A stretch of 63,813 nucleotides of DNA, the filler included, from Guillardia theta CCMP2712 (lineage: Eukaryota > Protista > Cryptophyta), in the NCBI RefSeq assembly GCF_000315625.1. It is 4 parts of 4 records of this genome, joined end to end, with 100 filler letters (N's around TTAATTAATTAA, not from the genome) between each part and the next. Parts side by side here need not be neighbours in the genome. Positions count along the whole stretch, not along the records: positions 1 to 25,567 come from NW_005434597.1; 3 more parts are not named here. One strand, given 5' to 3'. This document shows positions 8,985 to 14,490 of this stretch, piece after piece; the first letter of the stretch is position 1, and each line of letters starts with the position of its first letter. The notes under the pieces were generated by a model, which saw only the letters and a program-made list of their open reading frames with translations, made no database searches and had not been told where the DNA came from. A program made the translations under genes and the position numbers.

Positions 8985-10789
8985 CCTTGGTGCTTCCTCA
9001 TGCTGAGAACACAGAGGTCGTCCGCTCCTCTCTTCTCCACGATGGTGAGTTGCCTCGAGCCCTGCAGACGACATTGGCACGACTTGACAGTGAGGTCGAG
9101 GAGGAACGTGCCAGTCGAGTCCCTCGATGCCTGCAGGTCAACAGCGTCGACCGTCATTCTCAGAGTCCCTTGACTTCGGTCGTCAGAGCAGGTTGCTAAA
9201 GAGACTTGGAATGAGCAGGTTCCCACCACGACGTGAGCTTTCATTCCGACTTGCGACCAGGCCAAGAATGAAGACGGACAGCCGGAGGGTAGGAGAGCAT
9301 CCAGGCTGTTCTCAACAGCCAGCACAGGAACTTGAAGGCGGTTGCCCCAGATGTATACATCGATGTCACCGCTAACGTCGTGGTCGCCGATGTCAAAACT
9401 CTTCGTCAACAGTGTTTTCAAGGTCTTGTCCTCGCCTCGCGCCCTCTCCTCGCTCTCAGGCTCAAACTTGGAGAAGACAGCATCTCTCAGCGCCATGATG
9501 GTGGTCTGCTGCATTCCCTGCTCCAGGTCTCCCAGCTCCTTCACGCTCTCCGAGACTTTCTTGTCGTCGTCAGAGCAGACGCCCTCCAGGTACCTCCAGA
9601 GGCACTGACGATAGCGACGGCCCGTACGAATGGCTCCCAAGACATTCGAAAGGTTGAGCTCTGATCTCCTCCTCCTTACGTTGTCGGCAACTTCTTCAGC
9701 AACTGACTGAAGACGTCTGGAGTTGAACGCCGACGGGTCAAACTTTCCCCGCACGAGCCTCTCCGCTCTCTCATAGTACAAGACCAACTTTCGAACGACA
9801 CTGATTGCGTCGCTGATAACATTCGGCGCCACATGAACGTCCAACTCGTCGAGCCCCAAGGTCAACTCGATCTCCTCGGATGGCAGGTTGACAGCCCCCG
9901 GCGACTTCTTCTGTCCTCCATCTTTGTTGCTTACGATACAGTTTACCGTTATGGAGGAGCGGAGGATAGTCTGTGACTTCGATGTGCTGCTTGTCATTCG
10001 TTGAGCTGTTACAGGTCCACCCTCTCTCCATGACAACTCGATGCCCTTCAGATTCACCTGCTTGTGTTTCCTGATCGGACCCTCACCTTCGTTGCTCTCA
10101 GATAGCATGTTCAACTCTTCTGCTGTCAGGACGAACTCTGAAGAAGTATCAACCCCCGTCATGTACTCAACAACCAACTCCAGCTTCTTGATCACAATCT
10201 GGGCAGGAGCAGCGTCAGCGGTTTCGAAACGCGTACGAAGACTCTTACGTCGACTCGGAACACAATCCCGAAGAGAAAATTCATCATTGTAGGAGTTTGC
10301 AGCTGCGGAAGGCAAATCAGACACGTTTGCCCGTCGCATGAGCGGAACTATCCCACCTGCTCTTTGAACAGCAGCTGCTTCAGTCGAGCCCACAAGTCCT
10401 GCGATGCCCCTTCAACCTCCACCCTCCCAACTCAGATCACAGACCTGTCTGCACTCCTTCACCTTCCTCTCCTCCTTCCTCTGGACATAGTCCCGCAGAA
10501 AGTCGTCGAACTCTCTGACTCTAACTCGCAGCATCACTGTCTCCGCAGTCAACACCACCCGCTGGTCGCTGAGCCGTTCCCATGGGATTGTGACGCCAAG
10601 GGTTCCGATGTTCCCTTCCTTCACCTCGAGAGGAAGGTCGATATGGCTGAAGGCGTCAGCATTCAATGCGACGTTGCTTGCTGCAAACTTTCCCTCCCAC
10701 AAGGCTCTGCTCGCCTCCTCCGAGTCCAACCCAGAGAAAAAGCCGCACACCTGTCCTACGATGTTCTTGACCCACGGCGCAGACATCAT
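1..10789 (-). CDS. VPS13: VPS13-family bridge-like lipid transfer protein, multi-exon; 3' end runs off the window start
   Basis: The N-terminal exon (10412-10789) reads like a chorein-N domain (RALWEGKFAASNVALNADAFSHIDLPLEVKEGNIGTLGVTIPWERLSDQRVVLTAETV). A ~1500-codon central ORF (5891-10393) follows. Then come VAB/SHR-BD-like segments (VLLNRTELPL, PYMTVINHLGYEV, LLLDNRLSCDDCQVWQ), APT1-like LVGISLSLLSSDRRELVY..EVDNQ and FFEEIRIAPISFDIS, and an ATG2_C-like GLRGFVERPLEGARAEGVQGFFKGL at ~460-590. All are collinear on the minus strand. Confidence 0.88.
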
Positions 10790-10986
10790 GGCGGAGGACG
10801 GAGGTCTCGGTCTCTCAACCCTGCACTGGGGGGAGAGAGCACCTGTGGCGAGACACGTATCAGCGATCGGGAGGATGAGCGGGAGCGAATGAACGAGTGT
10901 GGTACTTCGACACCTTTCGTCTACCCCTCCTCCACCTCAAGCTGACTTGAGCTTTCTCTTTCCCTCCTCCACTTCTTGGAATCCTT

Positions 10987-11021
<35 letters not shown>

Positions 11022-11500
11022 ATCCCCATCGTCGTTGTTCTCCTCCCGCTTCTGCCGCGCTCATCGCCTGCTCCACCTCATGATCCTAGCTAGATTCCCC
11101 ATTGACGGACAGATTTTGTTCTCGTCATCAGAAATATGAGGTGGAATCATATCCTGCACATAAACTATAAAAAATGTTTCAATTTGGAACATAAACTACA
11201 GATACATTCATATACTATATTGCATGCAGTACCTCCAATCGATTGCAAAATTCATGTACTATTTGGGGGTGGGGGTAGTGACCCACCCCTTCACGAATTT
11301 CTCAGTACCCCTTGAATCATCAATCTTACCTACTACGGGTCATGATATGGAATAGTAAAAAGTAGGGGTAATGAGAGTGTACTAACCCCCACCTCCTGTA
11401 TCTGTAGGGTCCCTACCCTCCCGGTTGTAAAAGTACCCCTACCCCTTCTTCCCCCTTCAATCCCTGGCACCCTACCCCATCTGCTCCTTTCGGCCCCACC

Positions 11501-12369
11501 ATGGCGGCAATGCGCTCCATGCTCCGGCTGCTCGGCCATGGCCCCCCCCCTCCTCTTCTCCTTCTCCTTCTTCTCCTCCTCCCCCTCTCTACTCCAGCAC
11601 TTCAGCCGCTTCCACACAGCACAGTCTCTCTGCCTTCACCGTCCTCAGCTCCGCAACCCAGCTCCTTCCAATCTCACTGCTACCCGGCTGTAATGGCCCT
11701 GCGTGGCGGGAGAGGAGACAGTATCAAGGCCAAAGATCTCCGGGATAAGGTTGGGCCCATGTGAAAGGACGAGATTGCCTCCTGACGGCTGCTCCAGACC
11801 ATCGATGAGCTAAGTCAGCTCGAGCAGGAGCTTCGTTCCGAGCTAATGTCACTGCGGGTTGCGCAGCAGGTTGGTAGAGCTTTGCAGGATCGCAGCTCAC
11901 TGTCGTTCTTGGTAGGTTGGAGGTCAGCCAGGCAGAGTGAACAAGATCAAAACCGTTCGAAAGAACATCGCTCGCGTCTTGACTGTCATGGTCTCCCAGG
12001 CCAGGAAGGCCGAACACAAGCTGGCAAGTCGCAGCCACCTCGTGCTCGTTTGACTCACATGGCTTGCTGCAGAACGTGGGCAAGAAGCACAAGGCCAAGG
12101 ACATCAGGATGAACAGGTGCTTCGAGTTTGCCTCCGCCCATTGTCGATTCATCATGACATAGGCATTGGCCCAAAGCCTGGAGGACGAGGCTCACCAAAA
12201 AAGAGAAGTCGATCAAATCGGAGAAAGCAAAGAGATGCTTGAAGCTCAAGGTGATGGGACTTGTCCAGCCTGTCTCCTCGTCCTCGTCTACATCCTCGTC
12301 TTCATCCTCGTCCTCCTCCTCGTCTTCCTCGTCCTGTTCGTCCTCCTCCTCGTCTTCCTCGTCCTCCTT

Positions 12370-12417
<48 letters not shown>

Positions 12418-12827
12418 ATCCTCCTCGTCCTCCTCTTGTACGAGAAACAACTCACTTTCCCCTCAGATCTGGGGAGGAGGGGTGAGGCCTATGAGGAGGG
12501 TGGTGCTCACGGAGCCGCTTCCTCCTCCTATTCTTGATGTTGTGGACTATAGCATTGAGAGAACATTCGAGAAGTATCCCCGCCGCAGGTTCTCCTCCCT
12601 TGGTGCTGCCCAGTGGTGTTGATAGGCTTTGGTGCAGGAAAGGAGCTAAGGGTCGTCATACGGCAACCGGACACATCCCAGAGCATGCGAAGGTGAGAGG
12701 GAGGAGCGGAGGAGGCGATGCTGATGGTGTGCAGTTGGCGATGGATAAGAAGAAGTTGAAGTGGAAAGAGGAGAACAAGCGCCTCAAGGCCTTACGGCAA
12801 AAACAAGACCAGATGGCAGAAGAATAA
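11501..12827 (+). CDS. RPL35: Eukaryotic-type 60S ribosomal protein L35 (uL29) with ~70-aa N-terminal signal+transit-like leader and ~70-aa C-terminal extension; 8 exons
   Basis: The spliced product ...SIKAKDLRDKTIDELSQLEQELRSELMSLRVAQQVGGQPGRVNKIKTVRKNIARVLTVMVSQARKAEHKLNVGKKHKAKDIRMNRHWPKAWRTRLTKKEKSIKSEK matches the eukaryotic L35 pattern (KIKARDLR..LKVELSQLRVAK..GG..KIRVVRKSIARVLTV..GKKYKPLDLR..AMRRRL). All introns keep frame, including a GC-AG intron at 12024-12072. Stop TAA at 12825-12827. Confidence 0.88.
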
Positions 12828-12949
12828 GATCATCCTGAAAGCTTTATTCTTTTACATGATCAGCCCAATCAGTTTTGTCTACATAATATCCTCACTCGGC
12901 TGTACAGCAAGGTTGATATCTTTACATCATTATCCCATGAGCTGTTAGA

Positions 12950-13317
12950 TTATGCATCTTCATGCTTGCGAGTAAACTCACGTTTCCTACCCTGCACGTA
13001 TTTCCAGTCCATCTGATGCTTAAGCCTTCCACCAGCTTCCGTCATTTTTGCTTCCTTCCTCCCAACCCGCTACCCTTCTGGCAACGTCACAGTCGCTTTC
13101 TGTCCGACTCCTTTCCTTGTTGCCGATCTATGAGAAGTGTCTCTCCTTCCCAAGGGCCTCCCTGACTGTCGACCTTCTCGCTTCTCTTCTGCCGTTCTGT
13201 TTGACCGTCAGCAAAAGTCTCGTGAGTATCGATTCAAAGCATTACTTGGCCTCGCTCCGCTCTCTGCCTGCTGGTGATTTCCCTGCAGCTTTACGTCGTT
13301 TATGTGCTTGTCGCTGC

Positions 13318-13401
<84 letters not shown>

Positions 13402-14490
13402 CCTGTACATCGTTTTCCTGCATTTCCATTTCTTGCTGCTGTGATAGCAGCTGCATATCCTGCTGCTCTTTGAGTAGCTTTTCCTTGGCATGAAACATTC
13501 TTCTCAAGAGCCTCTCATCCTCCTTGAGCAATCTTTCTCTCTTCTCTCCTTCAGTCTCCTGCACCATGAGCAGGTTCAGATCTTCACACCTCAATACCCC
13601 TCTCCTCTTTCTGACCTCCCCTGCTTCACCTCCCTGTGAAGGGTCGGAGGTTTTTGTTGCATCCTCGTTGTCATCGTGATTATCACTCTGCGACGAAGTA
13701 TCTTCGTCGTCAGCGGTCCGAGCACGCGCTCCCTCCTGCATCGCTCCCTGTGCTGCCTCCCGAACACCGCTATCCTCCTGTCTGACAACTGGCATCTGCA
13801 TGGCAGCAGTCAGCATGGCGCTCCGCTCCAAGGTTGGTGAGAACCTGCATGCTCGTCCTTTCCCCGCCAGCATCTGATGCCTCCATGGTGGCAACCGACC
13901 GCTCGACAGTATTCGGCATGGGAACCAACTGCTCTCCTCCTGCCCTGACCTGTCCCTCCTGAGCTTGCAGCACCTGCGATGCCTCGAGCTCATAGACTCT
14001 GCGAAGCTCAGAGACGATCAGCATCTCCTCCAGCTCCTGCGCATCTCTCAGCATGGGCAGGCCTTGCCTCCCCCTCCCACCTCGTCCAAGTTTCTCTTCC
14101 TGCGTCGCAGAGCCTCCAAGGAGCGGCCTACCGCCGCGGCTCGCATCTTCTTGTGCCTCAGCTCTACTGCATGGCGGGATGCTCAGAGGTTGACCAGCAT
14201 GGCGGCGACTCACCTTGCAGGCTGGCCAGCCGATCCACCTCGCTTTCTCGCTGCATTGCTACAAGGCCCCCGCCTCTCCCGCGCCTGCCTCAGAGACGAG
14301 GAATAGAATGGCTGACGAGAGGGAGGGAGGAGGTAGAGGGGGCAGGGGAAGGAGGGAGGAGGGAGGAGGGAGGAGGGAGGAGGGAGGAGGGAGGAGGGAG
14401 GAGGGAGGAGGGAGGAGGTATGGTAAGGTATGGCATCAGGCGGAGAGCGAGAGCGGGAGAGGGAGGAGGGTTGACCCCAATCAGACATAA
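12950..14490 (-). CDS. Hypothetical coiled-coil protein with poly-(QE) tract, multi-exon; ends approximate
   Basis: Spliceable exons MQRESEVDRLASLQ|ELRHKKMRAAAVGRSLEAL..ELEEMLIVSELRRVYELEASQ..CEDLNLLMVQETEGEKRERLLKEDERLLRRMFHAKEKLLKEQQ. Convergent with RPL35 and divergent from TRAPPC1. Confidence 0.5.

Follow-up and report, generated by a model that had tools for sequence, protein, structure and literature searches.

The window analysed here, a 63,813-nucleotide stretch of Guillardia theta CCMP2712 DNA joined from four parts, carries at positions 11501-12827 of its plus strand a gene for a protein resembling the cytosolic-type ribosomal protein L35 (uL29), preceded in frame by a leader that ends in LRGG. 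An exact database match identified the gene as GUITHDRAFT_143670 (EKX39293.1), whose public annotation is hypothetical only. The locus lies within C77:337441-363063, a segment of contig C77 in the 87.1-Mb, 669-contig assembly in which the genome searches were made. Two assembled RNA contigs from different RNA studies, X1 (1326 nt) and X2 (1302 nt), place seven joints on the locus and define eight exons, seven introns and a product of 276 amino acids, with the following features.

11501..11749 (+): exon 1, beginning with the ATG at 11501 (RNA contigs X1 and X2)
11501..11599 (+): signal-peptide-like segment, amino acids 1-33 (Kyte-Doolittle 11-residue mean up to 3.3; inside X1 and X2)
11600..11692 (+): transit-peptide-like spacer, amino acids 34-64, Ser/Pro-rich and without Asp, Glu or Lys (sequence composition)
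11693..11710 (+): MALRGG junction motif, amino acids 65-70, the local form of [LM]xLRGG (orthologue conservation; genome-wide recurrence)
11711..11749 (+): end of exon 1 with the first mature uL29 residues, RGDSIKAKDLRDK, aligning with residues 3-12 of 60S L35
11749/11798 (+): splice junction of exons 1 and 2 (RNA contigs)
11798..11869 (+): exon 2, 24 amino acids, uL29 helix 1 (Pfam PF00831 positions 7-29; RNA junctions)
11916..12023 (+): exon 3, 36 amino acids, the best-conserved part of uL29 (VRKNIARVLTV) (PF00831, 28.6 bits; RNA junctions)
12024..12072 (+): GC-AG intron (RNA joint 12022/12072, 1-nt ambiguity)
12073..12116 (+): exon 4, KKHKAKDIR region (RNA contigs; 60S L35 alignment)
12163..12250 (+): exon 5, eukaryote-specific C-terminal helix of L35 (TRLTKKEKSIK...) (RNA contigs; 60S L35 alignment)
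12251..12466 (+): intron 5, 216 nt, with CTC/GTGCTC microsatellites (k-mer pile-ups, loose ends at 12300-12440)
12467..12588 (+): exon 6, paralogue-specific insertion (IWGGGVRPMRR...) ending in FEKYPRR (RNA contigs; family alignment)
12638..12692 (+): exon 7, conserved tail motif (G..G+.T.TGH.P.HA) (RNA contigs; family alignment)
12735..12827 (+): exon 8, basic coiled tail and stop codon at 12825-12827 (RNA contigs)
12828..13196 (+): 3' untranslated region (RNA contigs reach 13196, then a CT..AC, minus-strand, intron)

The last intron is also spanned by two raw reads of RNA set X17, which holds only 8 reads at the locus, too few for mapping of the 5' end. The RNA-based model of 276 amino acids corrects the public one (P0052, 259 amino acids), which begins at Met7 (11519) and misses the GC-AG intron; it uses a GT donor inside exon 3 instead and thereby loses the 11 residues VSQARKAEHKL. 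Candidate starts are Met1, Met4 and Met7, all of them ahead of the hydrophobic core. An additional upstream exon, suggested by 22 unmatched 5' letters of X1, was ruled out, as these letters map to C82:265720-265741 and X1 is therefore an assembly chimera. The microsatellites of intron 5 recur at 10980-11038 and at 11540-11591, the latter being the region that codes for the Leu run, and these repeats account for the broken or mis-joined state of X1, of the relative's transcript L012 and of the 995-nt contig behind database protein P0034.

The mature protein was identified by homology searches with single exons or with database proteins P0034 and P0052 as queries. Residues 71-276 constitute a eukaryote-type uL29 (L35). 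The Pfam family PF00831 (Ribosomal_L29) is matched at 59.9 bits against a curated cut-off of 24.5 (query P0034, identical to residues 65-276), and the closest solved structures are 60S L35 chains (E 8e-17), with residues 10-121 collinear with residues 3-113 of the 123-aa chains. The 60S match extends over about 110 residues and takes in the eukaryote-specific C-terminal helix, whereas bacterial L29 matches the first ~60 amino acids only (E 4e-6). The original prediction had described a basic C-terminal extension of about 70 residues. The extra sequence is real, but it is divided into an insertion of about 33 amino acids (exon 6) before the FEKYPRRR end of canonical L35 and a tail of 48 amino acids. 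Both are kept in orthologues, and throughout the family the stretches WGAGVRPMRR and ERTFEKYP show conservation. Differences from a close relative at codon positions 1, 2 and 3 number 31, 32 and 106, which indicates purifying selection on the gene.

This is one of only two L29-type loci that a six-frame PF00831 profile search found in the nuclear genome. The other, on contig C8, is the separate leaderless RPL35 whose existence had been in question, a canonical protein of 123 amino acids, so the L35-like gene is not the sole RPL35. A third, weak PF00831 match on C18 belongs to a coiled-coil protein and was set aside. The two copies share the PF00831 core and the eukaryotic C-terminal helix at about 45% identity; the C8 copy differs in having neither leader, insertion nor 48-aa tail, in its intron positions, and in standing apart from the very long branch of the L35-like protein. 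The anticipated absence of rpl35 from the nucleomorph is borne out by published gene tables, which cover the nucleomorphs of G. theta, Hemiselmis andersenii, Cryptomonas paramecium and Bigelowiella natans and list rpL35 for none of them (Maier et al. 2013, PMC3879969 Table S2). The same source states that the missing periplastid ribosomal proteins are host-encoded (PMC3879969). Given the canonical copy on C8 and the absence of rpl35 from the nucleomorph, the best reading is that the L35-like gene encodes a subunit that the host supplies to the periplastid 80S ribosome. On this reading, the gene would account for the uL29 that the nucleomorph-associated ribosome had been missing, and host-encoded periplastid ribosomal proteins, known in general, would now include this one by name.

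The leader has the organization that had been read from the DNA alone: a Leu-rich hydrophobic stretch in frame ahead of L35, a Ser/Pro-rich spacer, and MALRGG next to the uL29 start (SIKAKDLRDK). The signal-peptide-like segment has in-frame Met at positions 1, 4 and 7, two Arg, and nine Leu at positions 19-27. It continues with PLSTPA (residues 28-33), in which TPA occupies positions -3 to -1, and cleavage is predicted after Ala33 by the -3/-1 rule. Thus an Arg-containing n-region, a nine-Leu core, a mean hydropathy of 3.3 and the TPA site together give the segment the properties of a signal peptide under our hydrophobicity heuristic. The spacer in L012 is in frame and without indels, yet only 67% identical. 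No Pfam family was found in exon 1, and no ubiquitin beta-grasp domain lies ahead of the motif; the motif is thus a mimic of the ubiquitin tail and not the remainder of a ubiquitin fusion. The leader is part of the mRNA, as the RNA contigs run unbroken from 11497 and 11499 through it, and the downstream transcript start that the original prediction had named first among its refuting observations was not seen. The leader also contains an out-of-frame open reading frame of 51 codons (11538-11695) with a good-context ATG at 11538. Its TAA overlaps the ATG of Met65 (TAATG), a stop-start overlap that could allow re-initiation.

Relatives were collected with exon 3 as query of a profile-free search and by two word-based searches, and full-length members of the family measure about 210-290 amino acids. 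They comprise Cryptomonas curvata A0A7S0MLB3, several MMETSP transcripts and many marine metagenome contigs, together with P0002, a close Guillardia/Hanusia-like relative (78% identical), and P0035, a fragment labelled Hanusia phi that has no N-terminus. Among the relatives retrieved, no named organism outside the cryptophytes has a family member. A maximum-likelihood tree recovers the paralogues as monophyletic (100/100) and sets them, on a very long branch, away from all canonical L35, the C8 copy among them; the sequences retrieved for the tree included no red-algal L35. In the full-length alignment the leaders are unalignable and conservation starts abruptly at [LM]-x-L-R-G-G, after which orthologues read K/R-x-G/D-G/S-[IVL]-K-A-[KR]-[DE]. 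The motif is present in every orthologue that has an N-terminus, despite the variability of the leaders, so that the LRGG junction is not a product of chance. Most orthologues have V/L/P-[LM]-R-L-R-G-G, matching the last seven residues of ubiquitin; an MHLRGG form also occurs, and Guillardia and P0002 have V-M-A-L-R-G-G, closer to the tail of NEDD8. Between 9 and about 35 residues separate signal peptide and motif across orthologues, and the full-length members P0038, P0073, P0074, P0039, P0057 and P0072 all have in-frame hydrophobic N-termini. L012 was discarded as evidence on the start codon. It has no ATG before the Leu run, and at the CTC repeat the assembly passes into another gene.

Within this family, a GC-rich environmental clade (Tara Oceans contigs L013-L015 and the P0057 cluster) has intronless genes in which 9 residues lie between signal peptide and LRLRGG. 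Its genes sit among long open reading frames with no known domains: the neighbours gave no informative Pfam domains and a neighbour search only unnamed marine sequences, and for this clade the ESM Atlas returned generic L35 clusters only. Another curiosity is P0001 (KAI8483961.1, Branchiostoma belcheri, 3009 amino acids), in which 49 stretches resembling the L35 core stand in tandem; an array of processed copies, or else an annotation artefact, is the probable explanation.

The leader with its motif recurs across the genome, on other genes that number from dozens to hundreds. A DNA pattern coding for [ILMF]-R-[LF]-R-G-G had 471 matches in the whole genome, compared with 197 and 186 for two codon-order permutations and 307 for a backwards control, an enrichment of 2.4-2.5 times over the permuted controls. 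From the first 100 motif sites of the listing, and from 60 permuted-control sites, we then took 677 nt of surrounding sequence and passed both sets through one script. A site was scored as positive when an in-frame Met was followed, at most 25 residues on, by an uncharged 8-residue window with a mean hydropathy of at least 2.3 that ended 5-75 residues ahead of the site. A signal-peptide-like stretch of this kind preceded 46 of the 100 motif sites and none of the 60 controls (Fisher p 3.6e-12); for the exact xRLRGG subset the count was 42 of 77. The suspected enrichment of LRGG behind signal peptides is thereby strongly supported in this genome. The distance from hydrophobic core to motif was 11-61 residues, Pro never followed GG directly, and acidic residues made up 5.6% of the spacers as against 15% of the 30 residues after GG. 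The first motif residue in the 46 cases was Leu (37), Met (5), Ile (3) or Phe (1), so the Met of MALRGG occupies the hydrophobic position of the motif and is no evidence of an internal start. Extrapolation of the 46% to all 471 matches suggests about 200 genes with motif leaders in G. theta, a lower bound since the MALRGG, LRVRGG and VRLRGG variants and intron-split leaders are uncounted. Judged by coordinates, no listed motif site lies upstream of any of the three LHC genes on the contigs listed. A full-text search of the literature on cryptophytes, nucleomorphs, the periplastid compartment and complex plastids gave no description of the motif, a negative that does not extend to Curtis et al. 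2012 and Stork et al. 2012.

Cryptophyte nucleomorphs likewise lack ribosomal proteins S7, L22, S18 and L38 (PMC3879969 Table S2), and for this reason second nuclear copies were sought. These were found for S7e, L22e, uS13/S18 and L38e, and in each of them a hydrophobic N-terminus and a short spacer lead up to the motif, which stands just ahead of the conserved N-terminus. The junctions, with that of a TrpRS-like gene, are given below.

C99: S7e second copy, ...HLHMRLRGG then MDQIRR
C16: L22e second copy, ...NFLLRLRGG then QSQSF
C269: uS13/S18 second copy, ...NRCLRVRGG, about 20 residues ahead of IRIFNTNIDG
C15: L38e second copy, GEPLRLRGG then GSLQIYEIK
C28: TrpRS-like gene, VRLRGG after a signal-peptide-like start

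The canonical copies have no such leader within the exon that bears their N-terminus. An EF-1alpha-like GTPase (L064, C3:~1065284, minus strand) likewise has a signal peptide, a spacer and LRLRGG fused to its native GKEKHH start, and from this arrangement is a candidate periplastid elongation factor. The second copies and the EF-1alpha-like and TrpRS-like genes share the junction form [LMV]R[LV]RGG. A hydrophobic N-terminal stretch followed by xRLRGG also precedes a pyruvate kinase (L094, C8:~411626, minus strand), the N-terminus of a HAT1-type histone acetyltransferase (L143, C15:~751398, plus strand) and a SAP-domain protein (L088, C7:~516197, minus strand), which are candidate periplastid or nucleomorph proteins. 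The domains found downstream of the motif include pyruvate kinase, SAP, methyltransferase, HAT1_N, WW, LisH, TPR, ankyrin and a weak starch-binding module; enzymes and membrane proteins bear it as well as ribosomal proteins. For protein types that are otherwise cytosolic or nuclear, a signal peptide would be sensible only if they function in the periplastid compartment or the nucleomorph.

Some loci fell outside this set. A second L28e-domain locus (C21) was not counted as a second L28e, as by eye it looks like MAK16, an assignment that is unconfirmed. L37e has one locus only in the genome, and no orthologue of the S7e paralogue turned up in a scan of metagenomes. L120 and L121 (C13:130769 and C13:133887, minus strand) are near-identical, resemble a tandem duplicate, and have an in-frame signal peptide in one copy only. 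L098 and L128 (C8:1171620 and C14:11657) form a near-identical pair that resembles a dispersed repeat and has LSLRGG without a leader.

Two genes flank the L35-like gene. On the minus strand at 13197-13993 lies a convergent gene for a Glu/Gln-rich coiled protein of no Pfam family, with an intron at 13197-13245. It runs at its 3' end into the 3' untranslated region of the L35-like gene, with the result that unstranded RNA assemblies fuse the two. Divergent from the L35-like gene, an exon on the minus strand at 10412-10789 encodes a VPS13/ATG2-type N-terminal (chorein) region, and these two genes have ~700 bp of upstream DNA in common.

At the boundary of leader and mature protein there is thus a position-fixed, conserved and recurrent hexapeptide that resembles the ubiquitin tail, and it points to a signal, so far undescribed, for the maturation or sorting of periplastid-bound proteins. 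We regard it as reasonably probable that the L35-like protein is a periplastid uL29 with a three-part leader whose LRGG junction is cut by a peptidase specific for ubiquitin tails. The protein would be made on host ribosomes, its destination being the 80S ribosomes in what is left of the red-algal cytoplasm, the periplastid compartment. The signal peptide would bring it into the lumen of the endoplasmic reticulum around the plastid, and the short, acid-poor, Ser/Thr/Pro-rich spacer would serve its passage across the periplastid membrane. The third part, [LM]xLRGG, would act as a copy of the C-terminal tail of ubiquitin or NEDD8, after whose Gly-Gly a periplastid cysteine peptidase would cut and remove the leader. 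The freed protein would begin at the native L35 N-terminus, or no more than a few residues from it, and would enter ribosome assembly driven by the nucleomorph. The host-supplied subunit of the endosymbiont ribosome that had been conjectured for this locus gains support here from the leader in the mRNA, the second copy, the nucleomorph gene tables and the motif enrichment. A generalization can be offered only tentatively: proteins bound for the cryptophyte periplastid compartment or nucleomorph may have a three-part presequence that ends in an LRLRGG mimic, with a resident peptidase removing the whole leader after Gly-Gly.

That Pro never follows GG agrees with the specificity of deubiquitinases. 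In other eukaryotes rpl40 and rps27A are ubiquitin fusions. Both are encoded by the nucleomorph (PMC3879969 Table S2), so a tail-cutting activity would be expected in the periplastid compartment. A candidate for the peptidase is the orphan ZUFSP/UfSP-like putative deubiquitinase that is on all four sequenced cryptophyte nucleomorphs (PMC6559170).

The proposed leader can be compared with three known systems. Periplastid leaders of cryptophytes and diatoms combine a signal peptide with a transit-peptide-like region without an aromatic +1 residue, at least in the accounts of Gould et al. 2006 given in PMC12136025 and PMC4494062. The likeness lies in the signal peptide and acid-poor, hydroxylated spacer on a cytosolic-type cargo, and in a cargo that is needed in the compartment, with the host genome supplying what is lacking on the nucleomorph. 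Unlike these signals, the leader has a third, sharply conserved element, [LM]RLRGG, and a spacer that can be as short as 9 amino acids. The published discriminators, no Phe at +1 and the charge distribution within 25 positions, omit the motif (PMC12136025). The comparison with ubiquitin-ribosomal protein fusions is of another kind, for there too the tail stands directly before a ribosomal protein and the proposed cut after GG would free a native N-terminus. The precursors Ub-eL40 and Ub-eS31 are cut by deubiquitinases after LRLRGG, and the NEDD8 precursor ends in LALRGG. The differences are that the G. theta leader has 5-7 tail residues only, with no beta-grasp domain, behind a signal peptide and a spacer, and that many non-ribosomal proteins bear it. 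The third system is that of bacteriocins and quorum peptides, whose double-glycine leaders are removed by the C39 papain-like domains of ABC exporters. These are also short N-terminal leaders that end in Gly-Gly and depend on a cysteine peptidase tied to membrane passage, as is proposed here. The double-glycine system is bacterial and has another consensus before GG, and the analogy is functional and implies no homology.

Several points weigh against this interpretation. The RNA contigs begin only 2-4 nt before the first ATG, and signal peptides were judged by the hydrophobicity heuristic alone. The motif of G. theta itself is MALRGG and not LRLRGG. Deubiquitinases mostly need the ubiquitin fold, which is absent ahead of the motif. 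Family members from environmental samples carry no taxon label. The expectation that no Phe would occupy the likely +1 position held; the residue at the predicted cleavage site is Leu, not itself aromatic, but grouped with the aromatics in diatoms, where it can direct import into the stroma (PMC4494062), so that the published +1 rule is ambiguous for this gene. Finally, the ptDUP clade of deubiquitinases is reported absent from cryptophytes, in which no periplastid deubiquitinase has been found (PMC12412216).

Among the alternatives, the one that survives best accepts the periplastid destination and takes [LM]xLRGG to be an element of recognition or retention and not a cleavage site. The motif would then be bound by the ubiquitin machinery of SELMA and Cdc48, or would mark the cargo for retention in the periplastid compartment or for entry into the nucleomorph, and would stay on the mature protein or be removed elsewhere. 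The conservation of the motif and its link to signal peptides would suit such a role, while cleavage itself is something we infer; no ubiquitin fold lies upstream, and the basic R-L-R-G-G-K could be an N-terminal element for rRNA binding or import. Nevertheless, the motif stands just before the native N-termini of unrelated proteins (GKEK of the EF-1alpha-like GTPase, QIYEIK of the L38e-like protein, IKAKDL of L35), the composition switches exactly at the motif, and enzymes and membrane proteins have it too. A boundary fixed in this way is better explained by a processing site, and we consider the recognition element unlikely, if worth keeping in mind.

Distinctly less probable is that the protein enters the secretory pathway for some other end point (the endoplasmic reticulum, the cell surface, or the stroma by way of Leu at +1) and has a non-ribosomal role there. 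Leu at +1 is plastid-type under diatom rules (PMC4494062). Such a role is at odds with a mature part that keeps nearly all uL29 core residues under the purifying selection described above, and with a plastid that has 70S ribosomes. Other 80S ribosomal proteins and the EF-1alpha-like factor, moreover, share the leader type, and it is exactly these genes that the nucleomorph is without.

We give still less weight to translation from Met65, by which the leader would be a 5' untranslated region and MALRGG the start of a leaderless, divergent, cytosolic L35 paralogue. The database open reading frames P0034, P0002, P0036 and P0037 begin at Met65, the RNA contigs end close to the ATG at 11501, and the out-of-frame reading frame terminates in TAATG at Met65. 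The short calls are explained by contigs broken at the CTC repeat. The leader is transcribed and offers three upstream in-frame AUGs with no stop, full-length orthologues keep an in-frame signal peptide, the position of Met65 is Leu in 37 of the 46 genome-wide cases and in many orthologues, and the TAATG overlap is not conserved in L012.

That LRGG is a chance tetrapeptide, or the dead relic of a ubiquitin-L35 fusion, is scarcely credible: a match of four residues is weak by itself and ubiquitin-ribosomal protein fusions exist, but the conservation of the motif in a family with otherwise unalignable leaders, its presence on many unrelated genes, the 2.4-2.5 times enrichment and the link to signal peptides (p 3.6e-12) already contradict chance.

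Processing of a periplastid leader at a ubiquitin-tail mimic would bear on two questions, what sorts proteins to the periplastid compartment or to the stroma, and by what means periplastid leaders are taken off. Current predictors catch about one quarter of diatom periplastid proteins (PMC12136025). If the proposal is true, the motif would offer a one-line sequence rule for the periplastid proteome, covering some 200 or more genes in G. theta, and a marker for the host-encoded periplastid ribosome, translation factors, chromatin enzymes and metabolism, as well as a practical tag for the targeting of reporters. It would also represent a new maturation route for imported organelle proteins, with a cleavage mechanism that can be tested, and would tie import to the ubiquitin machinery that drives SELMA.

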